IMG/VR virus record: IMGVR_UViG_3300033159_000002
Location: 1-50,004 of that record
Length of the DNA: 50,004 nt
Direction: 5' to 3' (one strand)
Below, piece after piece: positions 4,657-36,651 of this stretch; position 1 is the stretch's first letter, and the number at the start of each line of letters is the position of its first letter. The position numbers were made by a program, and so were the translations under genes. The notes beneath the pieces are model-generated. The model saw only the letters and a program-made list of their open reading frames with translations, was not told the DNA's origin and made no database searches.

Positions 4657-4704
4657 TGTAATAAAGGTCAACATAAAGGTTTAAAAATATACTAAAACGA
4701 TTAT

Positions 4705-6772
4705 ATACTTAGTGCAATTGTATTCTTGTTGAATAACATCCTTTGCTTATGTACAGTGAAATACTTATTGACTTTTTCCATTGCTTGTGTGCAATAACGC
4801 ATTTATCGAACGTATTGATTGCTTATGTGCATGACAGGCATTATTGAGATCTGTTCTTGCTTATGTGCACGAAACAGTTTATTAAGACACCTTCTTGCTC
4901 GTGTGCAATTACTAACTTATTTATTAAGATTTTTTGCTCATGTGCATTAATAAATTTATCAGGGTGCAATAGGCTTCTTGTTGAAAATCGCCTCTTGCTC
5001 ATGTACAGTTTCCTTAATTATTATTTTTGCTCATGTGCATTTTTAACCCTAGTGAATATATTTCTTGCTTGTGTGCACACCTTTTGTTATTAATGCTTTA
5101 TTTTGCTCATGTGCATTGCTACTTTTAGTGAAGAAATTTCTTGCTAATGTGCAATGTATTATTTATTGAAATCGTTGATTGCTTGTGTGCAATGACGGTA
5201 TTATTGAATGGAGTTGTTGCTTGTGTGCAGGTACGGTTTTATTGAAGATAATATTTGCTGGTGTGCAGGTAGCCCTTTACTGAATTGTTCATTTGCTGGT
5301 GTGCAATCGAATTGTTGTTGAATGTAGTTTTTGCTAGCGTGCAGAGGATAAATTATTGATTTCCTTGTTTGCTAATGTGCAAAGATTTCGTGATTGAATA
5401 GTAGCCTTGCTAGTGTGCATATGGGATCTTATTAAATGGTAGTATTGCTCATGTGCAATTATCCGTTTATTGAATATATTCGGTTGCTGGCGTGCAAAAA
5501 CATAATTATTGAGTGAATTTCTTGCTTATGTGCAGGTCTTCACTTATTGATATTTTATCTTGCTTGTGTGCAACCACGTGTTTATTGAAAAGATTTTTTG
5601 CTAGTGTGCAATTATTATATTTCGTGGGTTTATAGGCTGGTATATAGTCTTCTAGTTATTAATTTTTCGCTTCTGTGCATACTCCCTTTTATTGAGAAGT
5701 ATCCTTGCTAGTGTGCATATGTATAATTATTGAACTAGTTGATTGCTTATGTGCAAAATGCCGTTTATTGACTATCTCTCTTGCTTGTGTGCAACATCAC
5801 AATTATCGAATTGCTTTCTTGCTAGTGTGCATAATGCCCTTTATTGAATTGATCCATTGCTAGTGTGCAAATTATTGATTATTAAATATATCCCCTGCTT
5901 GGGTGCACGTATTTGTTCTTGTGCACCATTTCTTCTTATTGAGTAACACTTTTGCTTGTGTGCAGACTATATTTTATTTGGAGAGATTAATTGCTCGTGT
6001 GCAGTGTCCCACTTATTGAAATAGGATATTGCTCGTGTGCATATTACCTATTATTGAATTGAACACTTGCTGGTGTGCAATAGCTAAATTATTGAATCGC
6101 TTTATTGCTAGTGTGCATTTTAAATTTTATTGAACTTTTTTCTTGCTCATGTGCAATAGAGAGATTATTGGATCACCACTTTTGCTGCTGTGCAGATCTT
6201 GCTAGTGTGCAGTAGGGCGATTATTGAGCTGACAGATTGCTAGTGTTGTGCAAGAAAGACATTGTTGAATTGCTATATTGCTAGTGTGCAGTGCGGAGTT
6301 TATTGAATATTTTTCTTGCTAGTGTGCAGAATATACATTATTGACCATTTTTGTTGCTTATGTGCAGTCTACATATTATTGAGAGCTTTTCTTGCTGATG
6401 TGCAAAAATTGCTTTATTGAAATGATATCTTGCTTATATGCAAGATTTCAATTATTGAATGCCTTGTTTGCTTGTGTGCATCCAACTTTTTATTGACGAT
6501 ATTTGTTGCTTATGTGCACTGCTCATTTTATTGAAGTGATTTTTTGCTAGTGTGCAATTGCATAATTATTGATTTCCTTTCTTGCTGGTGTGTATCAGCC
6601 TAATTATTGAATCCTTAGATTGCTGGTGTGCAGAGAACCGCTTATTGACCATTTTTTTTTTTTTGCTTATGTGCATTTCGATCATTAGGGAAGTAAAGGC
6701 TTGCTAGTGTGCATCAGCGGGTTGTCCATGTGCAATTATCATTTTATCGAACTTATTCCTTACTAATATGCA
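4705..6772 (-). repeat. TIGR-like dual-spacer guide RNA array, ~55 units, 38-nt period
   Basis: Plus strand: TTGCTnnTGTGCA-N9-TTATTGA-N9 repeated, with nearly all N9 segments unique; co-oriented with and ~25 nt downstream of the Nop/IS110-like gene. Confidence 0.88.
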
Positions 6773-6797: not shown

Positions 6798-7829
6798 TTA
6801 CTGTATGACTTTCTTCTTCTTAAGCCACGTTATCACCTCGTTCTTATCAATCCCTAACTCCTCCACGACTTTCTCAAATTTTGCCTTATATTTGTCGCTC
6901 TTTATGTCAACGTAGTAGTCAGTTATTGGCGCCTCTATGAAGTCTTCGTGCTCCTTAAGTATTTTGTACTCCTTCCCTAGCACCACCTCATAGGCCTTAT
7001 GTAATGGCACCCCCTCACGATAATACAATGATATGGCGAAGAGCTGAGATATCAGTAAGGATATTGCTTTCCTAGTCGCCGTACGCTGTACTCTGAGCTT
7101 TGGCCAGTCAGGGTGCTTGGCTGCTACATCCTCCTTAAAACTCTTTATAATTTTTGAATAAACACCGCCCGCCATCATTAGGTTGTTGGCTAGGATTCCT
7201 AACAAGAACGTCTTCACCTCTCTGTTGTATGGAACGTTTTTGGCTGCAGTACCTATGAGCTTGGTTCCATCAACGGGACATAGCCATCCTTCCTTCGACG
7301 GGGTCGCAGGTTTACCGTTGCTGGACTTGCCTGCGTAATACCAGTAACCGCACTTCGGGCACTGGAACATAACCGCAAGTCCTGCATAGCTCCTGAACTT
7401 ATTAGCATTGTACCCGAATTGTGGCGGAAATGCATAAACTATGAGCCTTGCAGCATTAGCTGGTCCTATACCCCTAATAAATGCTAGGAAGTTCGTAAAT
7501 TCTGGGAATTGTGTTATGACACCAGCGAGGAGCCCCTCCACTGTCTCTTGTTGTTTTAGTAAGTCGTAAAAACGTTGAATAAGTTCATTGGACGGTGTTT
7601 CCTCGACAACTTGCACTGGCTCACCGCATAGTGGGCACCTGTCCCTTTTCTCGTCCTCCTTCAGTAGAACCGCGTGTTTATTCTTACAAATAGTATACCT
7701 CTTTAGGAATACCCAACCGCTTCCGTTTTTCTTCGCTCCTATTCTATTTCCTAGGGAAACACGCAATTTTACAACGTCATCCCTGAACCTTACTAGATCC
7801 TTCAAATAGACTAGGTTCTTTTCACTCAT
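6798..7829 (-). CDS. Tas-like (TasA-type) Nop/IS110-Tnp-domain RNA-binding protein with two Zn-ribbon insertions; no RuvC or HNH evident
   Basis: Coiled coil (LVRFRDDVVKLRVSLGNRI), IRGIGPANAARLI and NANKFRSYAGL motifs of the IS110 Transposase_20/Nop fold; CKNKH..CPLC and CPKC..CPVD insertions; RBS GGGGTGA before ATG 7829. Confidence 0.8.
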   Translation of the reverse strand: MSEKNLVYLKDLVRFRDDVVKLRVSLGNRIGAKKNGSGWVFLKRYTICKNKHAVLLKEDEKRDRCPLCGEPVQVVEETPSNELIQRFYDLLKQQETVEGLLAGVITQFPEFTNFLAFIRGIGPANAARLIVYAFPPQFGYNANKFRSYAGLAVMFQCPKCGYWYYAGKSSNGKPATPSKEGWLCPVDGTKLIGTAAKNVPYNREVKTFLLGILANNLMMAGGVYSKIIKSFKEDVAAKHPDWPKLRVQRTATRKAISLLISQLFAISLYYREGVPLHKAYEVVLGKEYKILKEHEDFIEAPITDYYVDIKSDKYKAKFEKVVEELGIDKNEVITWLKKKKVIQ

Positions 7830-8001
7830 GTTTTTCCTCACCCCTCCTAAAAGTTATAGTCTTTTTCTCCAAATCAAGATACGGAATGAATTCCTTTAAA
7901 AAAACAGCTACCTTGGCTGGAACTACGATATAATATACCTGCACTTCTTTCCCATTTTGTTTCTTCACGGTTTTTACGTACCATTTTAACTCGAGTTCCA
8001 T
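7822..8001 (-). CDS. Small AbrB/SpoVT-like DNA-binding protein, first gene of the Tas operon
   Basis: YYIVVPAKVA swapped-hairpin-like motif; BRE/TATA GAAAACTTTTTAAA ~22 nt upstream of ATG 8001; overlaps the Tas start. Confidence 0.5.
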   Translation of the reverse strand: MELELKWYVKTVKKQNGKEVQVYYIVVPAKVAVFLKEFIPYLDLEKKTITFRRGEEKHE

Positions 8002-8036
8002 AATATATAATTCAAACACTTGTTTAAAAAGTTTTC

Positions 8037-8456
8037 TCACCTATTTGCCAATCGTAATAATAACTTATGTAACAACATTACTATTATTAACGACAGCATG
8101 GCAGCGATCAAAAACGACATAACATAGTATACCGATATATCGTTTTCTGACGGGACAACGACTACGTTATAATAACCTGGTTGTACGGTTGTGGTGTTCA
8201 CATACACGCTCCCGTTTACTTCCAACACTCCCCCTCCCTCTATGCTCAGCGTCGAATAAGGGCCTGAAGGGTAATAATAGTACTTCCCAGACGGTGTAAA
8301 GTTATACATGCCAGGCTGGAAGTACATGTTAAAAGTGTAGTAAGTCCTGGCTATAAGCGTAGTTAGCGCTGAGGCTATGGCGAGAGTTGAGAAAACGAAG
8401 ACGATCGCGTAAAACACGATCTCCTTCATCTTGTGGCACCCCGCCAGTAAGGACAA
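8037..8456 (-). CDS. Membrane protein (N- and C-terminal TM, sequon-rich beta region)
   Basis: Two TM segments; NFT, NGS and NTT sequons. Confidence 0.7.
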   Translation of the reverse strand: MSLLAGCHKMKEIVFYAIVFVFSTLAIASALTTLIARTYYTFNMYFQPGMYNFTPSGKYYYYPSGPYSTLSIEGGGVLEVNGSVYVNTTTVQPGYYNVVVVPSENDISVYYVMSFLIAAMLSLIIVMLLHKLLLRLANR

Positions 8457-9140: not shown

Positions 9141-9569
9141 TCACTTAATATATTTTAATACGACACGCTCATCATGCAGCAACACTACCTGTGTGTGTGT
9201 GTGGGTTTTGAGATGATATAACGCGTGCGGAAACTTTGCATGCATCATTCTCTTCATAAAGACCATTATTAAAACGTTCTGTTGGTATAATAAGTGAAAC
9301 CAACTAGTCGTTGTGTCAAATGGTAAATATAATAGAATTTCACTATGAAGGATTTTATGACTCGTTATAGCTCTTAATATGAAGGGTTTTTTGTTTGAGA
9401 ATGGCGGGTTGCAGTAAGAGTGGTCTGGCCATAGTTTTACTGCTGCATTAAATTTTGTTTTATCTAGGCAAACGTCTGTGAACTTTAGTTCTTGTGTTAT
9501 AATATCATAAAGGGTTTTAGGCGTTGGTTTATTGTCATGAACCCCTTTCGGTGGAAATTTAATTGTCAT
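9141..9569 (-). CDS. Phage Dam-like DNA N6-adenine methyltransferase
   Basis: DNKPTP, FTDVC, W..SYCNPPF catalytic motif, LYLPFDTTTSWF (PF05869-like pattern). Confidence 0.75.
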   Translation of the reverse strand: MTIKFPPKGVHDNKPTPKTLYDIITQELKFTDVCLDKTKFNAAVKLWPDHSYCNPPFSNKKPFILRAITSHKILHSEILLYLPFDTTTSWFHLLYQQNVLIMVFMKRMMHAKFPHALYHLKTHTHTQVVLLHDERVVLKYIK

Positions 9570-9873: not shown

Positions 9874-10884
9874 TCATATGATCACCTCAAGCTTTCTTAA
9901 CAAGGTTGGTTCTCCTAGCTCATGGCCGCACCTCGGACATTTTCCGCCGAACATTGACTTTATTTCTGATGGAGCTCTTACACCATAATAGTCCTGCCCT
10001 ACCTTTTCAAACCTATACAACTCATATCCGCAGCTTTTACATACGTACCTTATAGGCCCTAAAACCTCTACTATTTCCTTATATCTGTGCCTTATGATCG
10101 TTTCAGAAATATTCAGTGCTTTTGCTACTTCTTTTTGTGATTTCCTATTGTCCATTAGTATAGCCACCACATACACCGCAGCAGCGCTTAACGTTAAGTA
10201 ATTGCCGCTAATTAGCCCATTCTTATACATGTAGTCTATCAGCTCTGCAGCTTTTGTCCCTATAATCGGCGGTAGGTTTAATTTGTCAACTATTTTAGGG
10301 ATATATTTGGTCGGTATTATTGTAGGCCTGAATTCTGGGATAACTGTTTTTATCCTCTTCGTGGCCTGCCAGAACTCGCTTATGGAAACATCAAACTTTG
10401 CCTTAAATTCCTGCAAAGATATAGGCACATTATTCATTTGGCACGAATAGTATAATACTGCGGCAATTAGCGCATTTAAACTTATCCTCCTTTCTAACCC
10501 ATTCTCAATTAGCCTTCTTAGTATAAGTGCGGCAGTTTCTTTCACATGTTTTGGTAGATCTAGTTTTGATGCTTCTCTGTTAAGCCTTGAAAGGTATGTC
10601 ACTAATTTTTTCTCCCTAGTAGATGAGATCCTACTCCAGTTATGTAACCTTTGCATTTTCATTAGCTTTATCCTATCTTTTACCTTAGCATATCTTCCTA
10701 TCGTGGTTGAAAGGCCTTCATCGTGGATTTTTAGGGTCAGTGGGGATCCAGTCCTTTCCCGCTCTAAGACGTCCTCATGATTATATACTCTCCATTCTGG
10801 TCCTAGGTCTACAACTCTGTCCTCTATAACTTCCCCTGTCTCTGTGTCAACGTACTCTCCTCTTTCAGGGTCAAAGATTATCAT
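9874..10884 (-). CDS. tfb: Transcription initiation factor B (TFB/TFIIB) homologue with C-terminal Zn-ribbon fusion
   Basis: [38 protein letters not shown], two cyclin repeats, [25 protein letters not shown], then CKSC...CPRC. Confidence 0.92.
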
Positions 10885-11608: not shown

Positions 11609-11796
11609 ATCTCCTGTACCCTCATTTCGTTGTTTTTGTAATTCTCTTCAACGAAATTTTTCTTAATTTTCTTCATGGACAAGTACGATTTGATAGCTTC
11701 TCTGATTACCTCACTTCTCACTTGTTTAGTATTTATGCAGTATAGGTCTAGTTGCTGTAACAATTCCTCCTCTAATTTAAATGTCACAACTCTCAT
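11605..11796 (-). CDS. CopG/RHH transcriptional regulator
   Basis: MRVVTFKLEEELLQQLD...RSEVIREAIKSYL; RBS GAGGTGA. Confidence 0.88.
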   Translation of the reverse strand: MRVVTFKLEEELLQQLDLYCINTKQVRSEVIREAIKSYLSMKKIKKNFVEENYKNNEMRVQEI

Positions 11797-11818
11797 CTTC
11801 TTCACCTCATGGTAATTC

Positions 11819-12130
11819 TTATTCGTCTTCCTCACCTTTTTGCGGTAAACTCCCCAGTTTACCGTCAAATTCTGATACCATTTGCCTCAAACTTAAATCT
11901 CTTTTCTCTTCAATTAATTGTAACTGTTTTGCGTAATAATGTAATCTTGTCCCGACTTCTGCTTCATCATACTCCATTTTGTTATGTAAGTAGAATTCTA
12001 AATTCTCTATAATCTCTTTCAATTCCTTGTAAATTCTTATTGCCGTCCTATCAATCCTAGTTAATCTCTGAGCCTTATAGGCTAGAGCATACGCTTTCTC
12101 TAAGTGCTGTTGCAAAGTAGTTTCAGCCAT
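11819..12130 (-). CDS. Hypothetical helical protein
   Basis: Operon member with RBS; its C-terminal KLGSLP is encoded by a motif copy. Confidence 0.7.
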   Translation of the reverse strand: MAETTLQQHLEKAYALAYKAQRLTRIDRTAIRIYKELKEIIENLEFYLHNKMEYDEAEVGTRLHYYAKQLQLIEEKRDLSLRQMVSEFDGKLGSLPQKGEEDE

Positions 12131-32256: not shown

Positions 32257-35200
32257 GTGTTCTTCAGACCACATTTTACATATATTGAAGCAGCTACAGC
32301 AGAACAAACACAGGCTAGGGAAGCTGCTGCAAACGAAGAATGGAGGAAAAGGCTCCTCCTAAGACCTTCTGAGATTAAAATACAACACAAATCGATAACG
32401 TCTATACCTAGAGAAGTAATAATAAAGCTTACCCACCTTTCAGCACATGAGCAAGAACCAATCGTTAACCCGCCAGCACATATAACCCTAGTACGTATCA
32501 TAAGGCCTCGTGAGAGTGAGCAGGAACCAAACCCGCCAGCACATGAAAGACAAAGGCGTATCTATTTCTTTGGAGGATCTTCCCCTAATTTACCTACCGA
32601 TCTCCAGAAGCCTAGGCCGTTTATAACATATGTTCCTAATAGTTTTTGGGATCAAATTACCCGTAAGCAAGAAACAAACTCATCTGCTGTACACCACACA
32701 GAAGGGCTTAGTCCATGGGCACGTAGTCATATAGCAATGGCGCCTGATGAAAGAACTCCAACACCTAAACTAACCCCGTTCGACCAACTTCATATGGCAG
32801 CATCTGGTATCGAAGGGTCCCCAACACTGAATTCTGGTCCTGTAATACCACACATTTATAACCCTCCACCAATAATGCCAGTCAATTCCCCACCATCACA
32901 GCCACCAGCTCACAACAATGCTAGTCCTCCACCACCGCCTCCATCCAATAACACACCTTCGCAATCCAGTAACCCATTCGGCTTCTTCGGTTCTTTATTT
33001 GGTTCAGTCGTTAACGCTGTGACTAACGCAGTAAGTGGAGGTAATAATTCGGGAGGAGGTCAATCAAATAACCCGCTCACGTCGTTCCTCAGCTCTGCTG
33101 CAAATGCTGTGTCTAGCATGGCGAATGCTATTGGAAACGCAATAAGTCATGGCCAAATCGTTGCTAATGCGGCAACTTCTGGAGGCCAACCCAGTAACCC
33201 ATTCGGTGCGATAGGTTCGTTCTTTAGTTCAGTTGGTAATGATATTACCAATGCTGCATCCACATTTGTTAGTGATGTAACTAACGCAGTACAGAGTGCT
33301 GGGAGCGCAATAACTGGAGCATTGTCAACTGCTGGAAATGCAATAAAGAACGCTGCGTCCACAATTGGTAGCGACATAACTAACGCAGCAAAGGATGTTG
33401 GAAACGCAGTAACTAGCGCATTATCAACTGCTGGGAAAGCAGTAACTGGTGCACTGACGGATGTCGGGAACACAGTAATTGGAGCACTTTCAGCTGCGAA
33501 TAACGCAATACAGAACGCGTATAACTCCGTTTACGGAAACAAAATCCAGCAAGAGAAGCAGCAATTAGAGAACCAGCTCAAACAATTACAGCAGCAAGCG
33601 CAGCAAGAGTTAAACCAAATTCAACAGGAGAAACAGCAAGTACAAAACCAGTTGCAGCAAGTGCAGCAGCAAGCCCAACAAGAGTTAAACCAAATTCAAC
33701 AGGAGAAACAGCAAGTACAAAACCAGTTGCAGCAAGTGCAGCAGCAAGCCCAACAAGAGTTAAGTCAGCTTAACCAAGCCCAACAACAAATACAAAGTCA
33801 GTTGCAACAAGCCCAACAACAGGGTCAGCAGGAATTAATGCAAATAAGCCAACAGGAACAACAATTACAAGCTGAGTTACAACAAATACAACAATATGAA
33901 GCACAAGCCGAGCAGATGCTACAACAGAATCCTAACAATCCACAATTACAGAGCTACTTACAACAATTGCAGCAACAGCAACAACAAATACTGCAAAACT
34001 TAGCTCAGCTTAACCAGGCACAGCAGGAAGTACAGACGTACTTACAGCAAACTCAGCTTCAAGCACAGCAGGAGTTAATGCAAATTAACCAAGCCCAACA
34101 ACAAATACAAAGTCAGTTACAATTAGCTGAACAGCAAGCCCAACAAGACTTAGCTCAGCTTAACCAAGCCCAACAACAAGTACAGACGTACTTACAACAA
34201 GTGCAACAACAAGCCCAACAGGATCTGAACAAGCTTAACCAAGCCCAACAACAAATACAAAGTCAGTTGCAACAAGCCCAACAACAAATACAACAAGAGT
34301 TAGCGCAACTCAACAAACAACAACAAGGGGGTAACCCACTCCAACAGTTCTTTACTGACGTAGCTGATGTTTCAGCATTAATAGGCTATTACGCTACTGA
34401 AGGATTGGGCGGTGTCGGAGAGGAGTTGGCTCACCTTGTACAGGGTAAGGGTCTTGAGAATTTCAGCCAAGCGATTGCACAGTTCAATAAGGCAGGAGGG
34501 CAAAACATCGCTAAGATTGTAGGTGATGTCACGGAAGTCGCGTTACCTGCGATAATTACTGCGGTCGTTGCACCTGAACTACTACCCGCCGAGCTCATCG
34601 GCGAAGCATCATCGGTAGGTATCGGCGAAGTCGCTACAAAGCTCACCACAGGTCACTGGCAATCACTACAGCAAGTGTTACAGGAGGCAAATGAGGGTGG
34701 TGTGCTAGGCGCTATCGGCGAAGCTGGCGGTCTAGCATTAGAGTCTGGCCTAGCGAAGGGGGCAGGCGCATTAACGAAGTTGTTGACAGGTAGCGAAGAC
34801 TTGGCGTCGCAAGTGGCACACCTAACACCAGTGTGGAGAGCGGCAGGCGGTGCGTTAACTAACGTGGCACTACAGTTACCTTTCTCGCAGAACCCTGAGC
34901 AGCTGGCAATCGCTGGAATCATAGGCGGTTTGGCAGGTGGCTTAGGCCCTGGTATAGCGGGCAAATTGATGAGCAAGATAGACGAGATTAGAGGGACTGG
35001 TGGTGTAGCAGAACTAGAAACGCTCACATCACCCCTCACTGGCGAGACCACAGAAGCGTGGAAGATAACGCTACCCAGCGGTGACACGGTTTACTTAGTA
35101 CCAAAAACTACGTTCGGAGAAGGAGATATTAGCGACTTCGTAGACGCATACACAGGTAAAACTACTTTAGCGACTCACGTGACTCCATCGCGTGATTTCC

Positions 35201-36651
35201 TTAATGAGGTTGCTAATGGAGAAGCGCTTGTAAAGGTAGCAGGCGAACCGCCTAAAGATGAATGGGCGTTCCGAGAGTGGGGACATTTAAGGAATTTATA
35301 CCTCTCGCCTGGCGAAAGTGAGGACGTGGGAGTAGCGTTAACTGCATACTCAGGACTAAAGGACACAGAGCCTGGCATACCTGAGTTCAGCATAGGTCGT
35401 TCAAGTGTGAAAAACGTACTCTACAGATTCCTTCACCCCTTTGATAGAGGTGGTATAATAGGTATAAAGACTGATGCTGTTGATATTGAACCTCCTGAGG
35501 AGTTAGTCGATTATATTTTGGCTAAGAAAGCAGAGTATTTGGCGAACGTAGAATCTAACTGGTTGAAAAAATTCGCGAATAACTTCGCCATGAAGGAGTT
35601 ACTTAACGATCCAATATATGGCCCCATGTATAAAGAATACATAAACGAGCTGCTGACCTATAGTGCTGAGCACGGGGAACCTGTAATCGACCCTGAGGGG
35701 TTATTAGGCCTCACTCACGAGAGGCAGATAGAACTCGCTCCTGGTGCTAAGTTGAGAGGAACTGGAGAAGTGTATAATATATGGGTGAGACAGACACCAG
35801 AACTATTTAGAAACCTACCTGGGCCTCTGCGTGATATCCTCTCCGACTGGTCGAGATTCAAGTATGTCGGAGCAGAAATCATCCCTGGCGAGCCTCTTAA
35901 CTTGTTTGAGGACACAGAGAGTAATGAGACAGGAGGAGAGAGAATACCAGAATTGGGTGGTGAAGAGGGAGGAGAGAGAATACCAGAATTGGGTGGTGAA
36001 GAGGGAGGAGAGAGAATACCTAAGTTGCAAGGTGAGGAAGGAGGTGAAGAGGGAGGAGAGAGAATACTTAACGAGGGTGGGGAATGGAGGCTACCAGAAC
36101 CGATTTTACGGGAACCGTTCTGGATGGAACGTGAACCTCAACTAGAGAGTTCAGAGTTACCAACATATACTTCACCTCCACGGGACATTTATTCGTCCCC
36201 CTCACCAATTAGCAACCCACCACCTCCAATAATATCATCCCCATCGGTACCCACCATTAACCCACCATCTTCAACGTTGCCACCGATACCTCCTATTAAT
36301 TCACCGCCTTCGCCATCGCCAATAACATCACCGCCACCTTCACCCACCATTTCACCGCCTCCTCCAATCAACTCACCGCCCTCACCGCCATCCATCAGTT
36401 CACCACCGCCAATAAATTCTCCTCCACCACCCCCTATTATTAATATACCACCATCTGAGTACATACAGATAGAATCACAATCATCACCACCACCGCCAAT
36501 ATTCTCTTCGTCAACTGTTACCGAAAACGAATCGCCAATGCCGATGGGCCCACCACCAATATTGCCAGCGATAATGCCAGGTGGTTTTGGAGGAGGCGGA
36601 AACAACAACATGGAAATTAGCGGGATGGCAGGCGAGGTGATCTACCTGTGA
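32257..36651 (+). CDS. Giant multidomain protein (1464 aa): Pro-rich, amphipathic 11-mer repeats, Gln-rich coiled coil, hydrophobic G/A helices, globular (ART-like?) domain, Pro-rich tail
   Basis: Sequence composition; 75-bp tandem repeat near 33604-33763; 36-bp repeats near 35932-36066. Confidence 0.9.
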   Translation: MFFRPHFTYIEAATAEQTQAREAAANEEWRKRLLLRPSEIKIQHKSITSIPREVIIKLTHLSAHEQEPIVNPPAHITLVRIIRPRESEQEPNPPAHERQRRIYFFGGSSPNLPTDLQKPRPFITYVPNSFWDQITRKQETNSSAVHHTEGLSPWARSHIAMAPDERTPTPKLTPFDQLHMAASGIEGSPTLNSGPVIPHIYNPPPIMPVNSPPSQPPAHNNASPPPPPPSNNTPSQSSNPFGFFGSLFGSVVNAVTNAVSGGNNSGGGQSNNPLTSFLSSAANAVSSMANAIGNAISHGQIVANAATSGGQPSNPFGAIGSFFSSVGNDITNAASTFVSDVTNAVQSAGSAITGALSTAGNAIKNAASTIGSDITNAAKDVGNAVTSALSTAGKAVTGALTDVGNTVIGALSAANNAIQNAYNSVYGNKIQQEKQQLENQLKQLQQQAQQELNQIQQEKQQVQNQLQQVQQQAQQELNQIQQEKQQVQNQLQQVQQQAQQELSQLNQAQQQIQSQLQQAQQQGQQELMQISQQEQQLQAELQQIQQYEAQAEQMLQQNPNNPQLQSYLQQLQQQQQQILQNLAQLNQAQQEVQTYLQQTQLQAQQELMQINQAQQQIQSQLQLAEQQAQQDLAQLNQAQQQVQTYLQQVQQQAQQDLNKLNQAQQQIQSQLQQAQQQIQQELAQLNKQQQGGNPLQQFFTDVADVSALIGYYATEGLGGVGEELAHLVQGKGLENFSQAIAQFNKAGGQNIAKIVGDVTEVALPAIITAVVAPELLPAELIGEASSVGIGEVATKLTTGHWQSLQQVLQEANEGGVLGAIGEAGGLALESGLAKGAGALTKLLTGSEDLASQVAHLTPVWRAAGGALTNVALQLPFSQNPEQLAIAGIIGGLAGGLGPGIAGKLMSKIDEIRGTGGVAELETLTSPLTGETTEAWKITLPSGDTVYLVPKTTFGEGDISDFVDAYTGKTTLATHVTPSRDFLNEVANGEALVKVAGEPPKDEWAFREWGHLRNLYLSPGESEDVGVALTAYSGLKDTEPGIPEFSIGRSSVKNVLYRFLHPFDRGGIIGIKTDAVDIEPPEELVDYILAKKAEYLANVESNWLKKFANNFAMKELLNDPIYGPMYKEYINELLTYSAEHGEPVIDPEGLLGLTHERQIELAPGAKLRGTGEVYNIWVRQTPELFRNLPGPLRDILSDWSRFKYVGAEIIPGEPLNLFEDTESNETGGERIPELGGEEGGERIPELGGEEGGERIPKLQGEEGGEEGGERILNEGGEWRLPEPILREPFWMEREPQLESSELPTYTSPPRDIYSSPSPISNPPPPIISSPSVPTINPPSSTLPPIPPINSPPSPSPITSPPPSPTISPPPPINSPPSPPSISSPPPINSPPPPPIINIPPSEYIQIESQSSPPPPIFSSSTVTENESPMPMGPPPILPAIMPGGFGGGGNNNMEISGMAGEVIYL

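Follow-up and report, generated by a model that had tools for sequence, protein, structure and literature searches.

The 343-amino-acid protein encoded at 6798-7829 on the minus strand of the window (the 50,004 nucleotides of IMG/VR contig IMGVR_UViG_3300033159_000002, locus L018 in our comparison set) is probably the TasA-type effector of a TIGR-Tas system in a large spindle-type virus of the Sulfolobales, and would bind its target without cutting it. It belongs to the class TasA already defined in the 2025 Science paper (PMC12045711), of which it is a new member only. The original prediction of a Tas-like protein is borne out by the fold, by the sequence profile and by the adjoining array. 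Predicted zinc stapling of two loops, a 38-nt array unit and a lysine in the processing loop are features of the lineage.

The tasA gene

6798..7829, minus strand: tasA, 343 aa plus stop, nuclease-free TIGR-associated Nop-domain protein

Read from a GTG codon, the open reading frame covers 6798-7841 on the minus strand (347 aa), and this frame does not extend beyond 7841. The ATG at 7829 was taken as the start because the homologues all begin with MSEK; this gives the 343-aa form and exactly the coordinates that had been predicted. Residue numbers refer to this form throughout. Four has to be added to number from the GTG, in which case the motifs read C52-x3-H56, C69PLC72, YAGL152, C161PKC164 and C188PVD.

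Fold, family and absence of a nuclease

The AF2 model, built from the family alignment (pLDDT 89.8, pTM 0.84), is composed in order of a helix (residues 3-29), a beta-rich region (30-80), a second helix (81-105), short helices with the GIGP and YAGL motifs, another beta-rich region (154-194), four long helices (203-291), a loop (292-311) and two last helices. By the model and by Foldseek, a Nop-type RNA-binding domain is present after a two-helix coiled-coil dimerisation hairpin. The segments of this core are the following.

7743..7823, minus strand: coiled-coil helix 1, residues 3-29 (DSSP), ending in the conserved GNRI; G27 and N28 invariant
7515..7589, minus strand: coiled-coil helix 2, residues 81-105 (DSSP), aligned to TaTasR 141-168
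7377..7505, minus strand: first segment of the C-terminal domain, residues 109-151, with the GIGP helix-hairpin-helix and YAGL
6801..6896, minus strand: C-terminal two-helix extension, residues 312-343, helices 312-325 and 329-338, with a basic KKKK tail

In the Foldseek search against the PDB the best six matches were made up of TasR (9mty, E 1.7e-4) and four TasH complexes, with a probability of 1.00 and TM scores of 0.40-0.60, and IS621 and ISCro4 ranked after them. The family profile matches 9mty_A (E 1.3e-4). The NCBIfam profile TIGR_Tas_endo (NF052498) is matched with E 1.3e-13 over its positions 4-212 of 215, at 51.5 bits, where the curated cut-off is 100, and the IS110 profile gives a much weaker match than the Tas profile (E 2.9e-6), restricted to positions 123-260 of 343. 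In PHROGs the family corresponds to phrog_33543, annotated as function unknown. The first segment of the C-terminal domain has a weak Pfam Transposase_20 match (residues 119-156), and the alignment with the IS110 profile stops at YAGL; the YAG is aligned with Y208-G210 of TaTasR in the HMM alignment. The C-terminal extension continues past the point at which the TaTasR core stops. Residues 312-343 alone are matched by two short proteins of the database, P0087 (65 aa) and P0092 (46 aa), which may be fragments or a separable module.

No Pfam match to HNH or RuvC/DEDD was found in the 343-aa protein, and besides small matches to zinc ribbons the fold search returned only the cores of Tas and IS110 proteins, and no nuclease. 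Since the reading frame stops at 7841 and the first helix begins at residue 3, there is no space for a nuclease domain. The absence of an N-terminal DEDD RuvC domain and of an HNH motif, claimed from the letters of the DNA, is thus confirmed by the limit of the frame, by Pfam, by the model and by the fold search.

Predicted zinc modules at the hairpin tip and in the wedge loop

7590..7742, minus strand: zinc module 1, residues 30-80, all-beta; predicted ligands C48, H52, C65 and C68
7221..7382, minus strand: zinc module 2, residues 150-203, enlarged wedge loop; predicted ligands C157, C160, C184 and D187

Module 1 carries the pattern C48-x3-H52...C65-x2-C68, with strands at 32-35, 38-41, 43-48, 53-55 and 71-77, and module 2 the pattern C157-x2-C160...C184-x2-D187, with strands at 154-156, 163-165, 176-178, 181-183 and 192-194 (DSSP of the model). 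In the model the ligand pairs of both modules sit at beta-hairpin turns, in a zinc-ribbon-like manner. The seven Cys/His residues and the Asp are invariant in 22 homologues of 60-95% identity, in which the mean column identity is 71%; judged from this conservation the motifs are above chance. The Asp of module 2, its fourth ligand, is often replaced by Cys in distant relatives (CCCC).

The position of both modules was determined by comparison with TaTasR, in which the coiled-coil helices span K109-D138 and A142-H168, the tip R139-D141 and the wedge G210-K230 (10.64898/2026.09.09.750476). In the HMM alignment helix 2 begins at TaTasR 141, so that module 1 represents a swap of about 50 residues for the 3-residue tip. 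After YAG the alignment resumes at TaTasR 228, equivalent to residue 200; with YAG as anchor, this makes module 2 a wedge of about 54 aa as compared to 21 aa in TaTasR. The C-x3-H...CxxC module that had been placed in the coiled coil is real as a motif, but it sits between the two helices and replaces the hairpin tip. The CPKC...CPVD module was found where it had been described, directly after YAGL, and lies within the wedge loop, which starts at the G of YAG.

In the solved Tas complexes the coiled coil supports the RNA-DNA duplex. The wedge loop separates the guide-paired strand from the displaced strand of the DNA and gives the figure-eight guide its shape (10.64898/2026.09.09.750476, PMC13421893). 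From their location at tip and wedge, both additions are at nucleic-acid-facing positions which are known to be variable. On the basis of the model and these complexes, the modules are most likely zinc-stapled, heat-stable enlargements of nucleic-acid-contacting elements that would stabilise the R-loop. They may compensate for the DNA-holding surface which is supplied by a dead RuvC domain in other non-cutting Tas proteins.

Between the knuckles of module 2 there is an invariant Ser-Ser-Asn-Gly (residues 169-172; 7316-7327, minus strand), which occupies the region of the catalytic serine of IS110; there is no alignable serine loop and no RuvC partner domain. Published Tas wedges contain a similar N-G-K turn. 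By sequence, the Ser-Ser-Asn-Gly is probably a conserved hairpin tip, not an active site. The tip module was also considered as a degenerate HNH and ruled out, being all-beta, with its lone His a predicted ligand and no match to an HNH family.

In the TIGR-Tas literature searched, no mention of zinc stapling or of a 38-nt unit was found. The words 'zinc' and 'ribbon' are both absent from the Xu 2026 preprint (10.64898/2026.09.09.750476), as is 'zinc' from the 2025 Science paper (PMC12045711) and from the 'Asymmetric DNA targeting' preprint; the listed papers that pair TIGR-Tas with zinc are, judged by title, reviews and unrelated studies.

The TIGR array

4712..6772, minus strand: dual-repeat TIGR array with 53 long repeats, directly downstream of tasA
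4675..4716, minus strand: distal array end, 3'-truncated edge repeat TGCAC followed by T-rich runs on the tas strand

The array contains 39 units with an exact spacing of 38 nt, each composed of 13 + 9 + 7 + 9 nt and reading TGCACAynAGCAA - N9 - TCAATAA - N9 on the tas strand. The dual-repeat TIGR architecture described by Faure et al. has a 36-nt unit (PMC12045711). About six irregular junctions split the array into sub-arrays; they are located near 4947, 5611, 5908, 6195, 6650 and 6676, and one of them contains an 11-base homopolymer run. The terminal module, made up of a truncated repeat, a spacer, TTGTTGA, a second spacer and a repeat, occurs twice (4712-4757 and 4964-5009; 78% identity). 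Such a mosaic of sub-arrays suggests growth by segmental duplication or fusion.

In all twelve related viral loci the array is kept downstream of tas on the same strand, and in five of the twelve the first repeat begins 2 nt past the tas stop codon. The T-rich runs at the distal end, which could act as a terminator, are conserved between the window and locus L007, and a truncated edge repeat closes the arrays of L003, L012 and L013 too. Archaeal transcription terminates at runs of five or more T. Runs of at least five T number two on the tas strand as compared to 13 on the opposite strand. The edge repeat UGCACAynAGCAA (UGC...GCAA) resembles the experimentally oriented edge of TaTasR, UGCGAGCCA. 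The truncated distal end agrees with the array ends described in PMC12045711. On these four lines, i.e. the T-runs, the arrays starting 2 nt past the stop codon, the truncated ends and the likeness to published arrays, we infer that the tas strand is the transcribed strand of the array. The ends of the edge repeat are near-palindromic and by themselves leave the strand ambiguous. The plus strand, which has a TATA-like box before a truncated repeat, was considered as guide strand and dropped in favour of the tas strand on the same four lines.

Repeats of TIGR arrays are characterised by a box D (UG) start, a box C (Cxx) end and a co-varying G-C pair between edge and loop. The edge repeat of the window fits the box D and box C features, while the loop repeat UCAAUAA lacks the G-C pair and in this departs from published arrays.

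Between viruses whose TasA proteins are 75-80% identical almost all spacers differ while the repeats stay fixed, and such a rapid turnover is the behaviour expected of guides. When 211 units were pooled (arrays of the window, L002, L003 and L007-L017), the spacer following the long repeat was found to be A-rich at positions 2-4 (55-63% A), and both spacers end mostly in a pyrimidine; in the second spacer only 2% of the bases at position 9 are G. This bias may reflect an extended recognition of the repeat or a bias in the targets.

Targets were searched for 37 units as 18-bp sequences in both geometries, in the window itself, in the complete genome of Sulfolobales virus YNP1, in a part of that of Acidianus tailed spindle virus (ATSV) and in 10 other loci. 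In these 199 kb no target was identified, and the two matches with two or fewer mismatches equal the number obtained with shuffled pairings. In whole sequence collections an exact 18-mer is expected by chance.

The putative guide-processing loop

6897..7007, minus strand: C-terminal loop region, residues 275-311, with P-L-x3-Y280-x3-L-G-K286 and H294

In dual-repeat Tas proteins the precursor RNA is cut by a Tyr/His pair of a C-terminal loop, which is Y289 and H296 in SpTasH (PMC13421893; Xu 2026). Residues 275-311 are the putative counterpart of this loop. The dyad counterpart was placed by motif comparison, the profile-to-sequence alignment with SpTasH (from a Salicola phage) having given nothing usable. 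The motif P..Y..LG[H/K/R] is found in 44 of 148 relatives, this family included, with His in 27, Lys in nine and Arg in eight. In the window the loop reads PLHKAYEVVLGK; Y280 and K286 are invariant, and an invariant H294 follows eight residues on. With Lys at the position of the catalytic His, self-processing of the guide appears possible but uncertain.

Relatives and distribution of the predicted zinc modules

A full HMM search returned 301 relatives. Among 144 full-length cluster representatives, eight carry both modules, 12 the tip module only and 18 the wedge module only (38 of 144), counts which are approximate as distant tips align poorly. In all module-bearing representatives the first helix is preceded by less than 100 residues. 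Four of the six zinc-bearing loci examined possess dual-repeat arrays of their own (edges for example UGCGAGACA or UGCGAGCCG). The search for homologues with the same insertions, proposed together with the original prediction, thus returned distant proteins that adjoin dual-repeat arrays, unlike ordinary IS110 elements, and the condition set for refuting the prediction did not arise at these four loci. At locus L021, whose protein P0096 has both zinc modules, a periodicity scan detected no array within 4 kb.

ATSV gp16 (YP_009230269) and YNP1 gp71 (YP_009219970), both annotated as 'hypothetical protein', are each 77% identical to the window protein over the full length, share its zinc ligands and have a like array immediately downstream, which after ATSV gp16 is annotated as a repeat region. 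These contiguous arrays have 24 long repeats in ATSV and 27 in YNP1, as compared to 53 in the window; in L007, L008 and L010-L017 the number is 10-36. Nearly all spacers differ between these two viruses and the window, and the genes flanking the ATSV locus differ as well. The ATSV array is the archaeal-virus example of a TIGR-like array cited by Faure 2025 (PMC12045711), and the BFVD model A0A125SJ55 (77% identical, TM 0.98) is a row of the Data S1 structural alignment of the same work, which places the family within the founding TIGR-Tas dataset.

ATSV has a second repeat region, annotated as 'possible viral CRISPR locus', 2.5 kb beyond its TIGR array (L003 10506-10795; record 11703-11992). 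A second, inverted array in L011 was recognised as an assembly artefact, the head of the sequence (1-352) being the exact reverse complement of its tail (6841-7192).

Neighbouring genes

7822-8040, minus strand: 72-aa ORF with an 8-nt overlap onto the start of tas; phrog_18276 (function annotated as unknown)

The 72-aa ORF is kept only in the YNP1-like subgroup. Farther upstream, side by side on the minus strand, are genes of a small Dam-like methyltransferase (9141-9569) and a virus-encoded TFB homologue (9874-10884), the latter with an extra C-terminal CxxC...CxxC segment. Elsewhere in the window, at 33537-34327 on the plus strand, tandem repeats of 75 and 150 nt are located within an ORF of 1464 aa (32257-36651) and encode a Gln-rich, probably coiled-coil segment; no confident family match was obtained for this ORF.

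Probable mode of action and alternative explanations

The most likely role of the 343-aa protein, considering the fold, the array and the characterised members of the class, is RNA-guided DNA binding without cutting. That other TasA proteins bind DNA and do not cut it has been shown by EMSA and transcriptional repression (10.64898/2026.09.09.750476) and by cryo-EM of PlTasA (10.64898/2026.08.11.744272). By homology with the characterised Tas proteins, the array would be transcribed together with tas or just after it, and the transcript would be cut inside the 13-nt edge repeat into guides of about 38 nt, each consisting of half an edge repeat, spacer A, the 7-nt loop repeat, spacer B and another half edge. 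One guide would be bound per TasA dimer, and each of its two spacers would base-pair with 9 nt of an 18-bp target, next to each other but on opposite strands. The complex would stay on the uncut DNA and keep a competing element, or a host or viral gene, from being transcribed or replicated, with the zinc-enlarged tip and wedge strengthening the hold on the R-loop.

The reading that the zinc tip and wedge mark a distinct nuclease-free TasA lineage, in which the modules go beyond stabilising and guide processing is altered, appears unlikely. Such a lineage, seen in Sulfolobales viruses, may possibly be widespread among archaeal viruses. Its modules could clamp the R-loop at about 80 degrees C or, alternatively, could dock the host transcription machinery and make the protein an RNA-guided regulator unlike bacterial TasA, and guides would be processed by another chemistry, to which the Tyr/Lys loop and the lengthening of the edge repeat to 13 nt would be due.

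Recruitment of a partner was part of the original prediction. As a recruitment platform, TasA would locate the target, and a separate nuclease, integrase or methyltransferase, TFB or RNA polymerase would dock on one zinc ribbon or on both; the outcome would be cutting, modification or activation and not a simple roadblock. Zinc ribbons often serve to dock proteins, and in the model both modules are added to the core at its surface. The genes of the viral TFB and the Dam-like methyltransferase are located on the same strand as tas and about 1.3-3 kb upstream, and TasA-ParB operons have been noted by Faure et al. (PMC12045711). However, when 15 other loci were compared, 12 of them with a close tas homologue, no neighbour was found to be conserved: TFB and methyltransferase accompany tas in two of the 15 and the 72-aa ORF in four, and ATSV has other genes upstream. 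The sole constant partner across these loci is the array, so that recruitment of a recombinase, methyltransferase or TFB found no support in the comparison. The modules are moreover at positions that touch nucleic acid in the solved Tas complexes, and their resemblance in the fold search to RNA polymerase subunit P or to ribosomal zinc ribbons does not reach significance. We thus regard recruitment as quite unlikely.

A particle in which the 9-nt spacers pair with viral or host RNA instead of DNA, for RNA targeting or as an RNA chaperone, is very unlikely. Box C/D RNPs have a Nop domain as well, guides of the box C/D type are numerous in the host lineage, and the 37 units yielded no DNA target in the 199 kb; against this, Sulfolobus box C/D Nop5 (3pla_A) is a Foldseek match at chance level (E 4.7, probability 0.08), the N-terminal fibrillarin-binding domain of Nop5/Nop56/58 is absent from the model, and all characterised Tas proteins have double-stranded DNA as substrate. 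Hardly probable at all is a decayed IS110-type element or a DNA-level repeat binder, with the zinc ribbons binding the array as iterons or as a centromere and no guide RNA involved. The weak IS110 profile matches and the length and regularity of the array could be read in this way, but the DEDD domain is absent, the IS110 alignment ends at YAGL and the Tas profile scores far better; the 9-nt segments turn over fast between close relatives with the repeats fixed, which is guide-like and not iteron-like, and the architecture of the array equals that of published TIGR arrays. The guided, non-cutting TasA remains the preferred reading.

Significance

The window provides a clean and complete nuclease-free TIGR-Tas system from a virus of hyperthermophilic archaea, and with 53 long repeats its array is among the longer ones. 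In terms of new kinds of system, the gain over the papers of 2025-2026 is small. Dual-repeat Tas proteins are not uniformly compact, as 38 of 144 representative clusters have tip and/or wedge modules (predicted zinc). Should the modules increase stability or strengthen binding, they would be of interest for engineering small, heat-stable programmable DNA binders and would bear on how TasA holds the R-loop without a nuclease scaffold.

Comparison with known systems

The best structural matches are TaTasR (PDB 9MTY) and SpTasH (PDB 9W03 and related entries), which also have dual-repeat arrays and in which the landmarks GNRI, GIGP and YAG as well as the P..Y..LG motif recur. In contrast to the protein described here, both cut DNA by means of a RuvC or HNH nuclease at the N-terminus, and their tip of 3 aa and wedge of 21 aa are without metal ligands. 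With IS110/IS621 (PDB 8WT6) the protein has in common the fold of coiled coil plus RNA-binding domain and the YAGL motif; in distinction to those elements it lacks a DEDD RuvC-like domain, and its locus has an array in place of a bridge RNA and element ends.

Closest in kind are the TasA proteins of Flavonifractor plautii (FpTasA), MbTasA and PlTasA, with which the protein shares the Nop core, the coiled-coil hairpin, the absence of a nuclease and the paired 9-nt spacers. In FpTasA the dual-repeat array is located directly downstream on the same strand, as in the window. The uniform 36-nt unit and compact Nop core described by Xu 2026 do not extend to the 343-aa protein and its array. As compared to those TasA proteins, the protein of the window has a tip insertion of about 50 aa and a stapled wedge of about 54 aa (predicted zinc in both), a 38-nt unit with a 13-nt edge and a 7-nt loop in place of the 36-nt unit, LGK in place of LGH, an extra C-terminal two-helix tail, and a virus of an archaeal hyperthermophile as its host.
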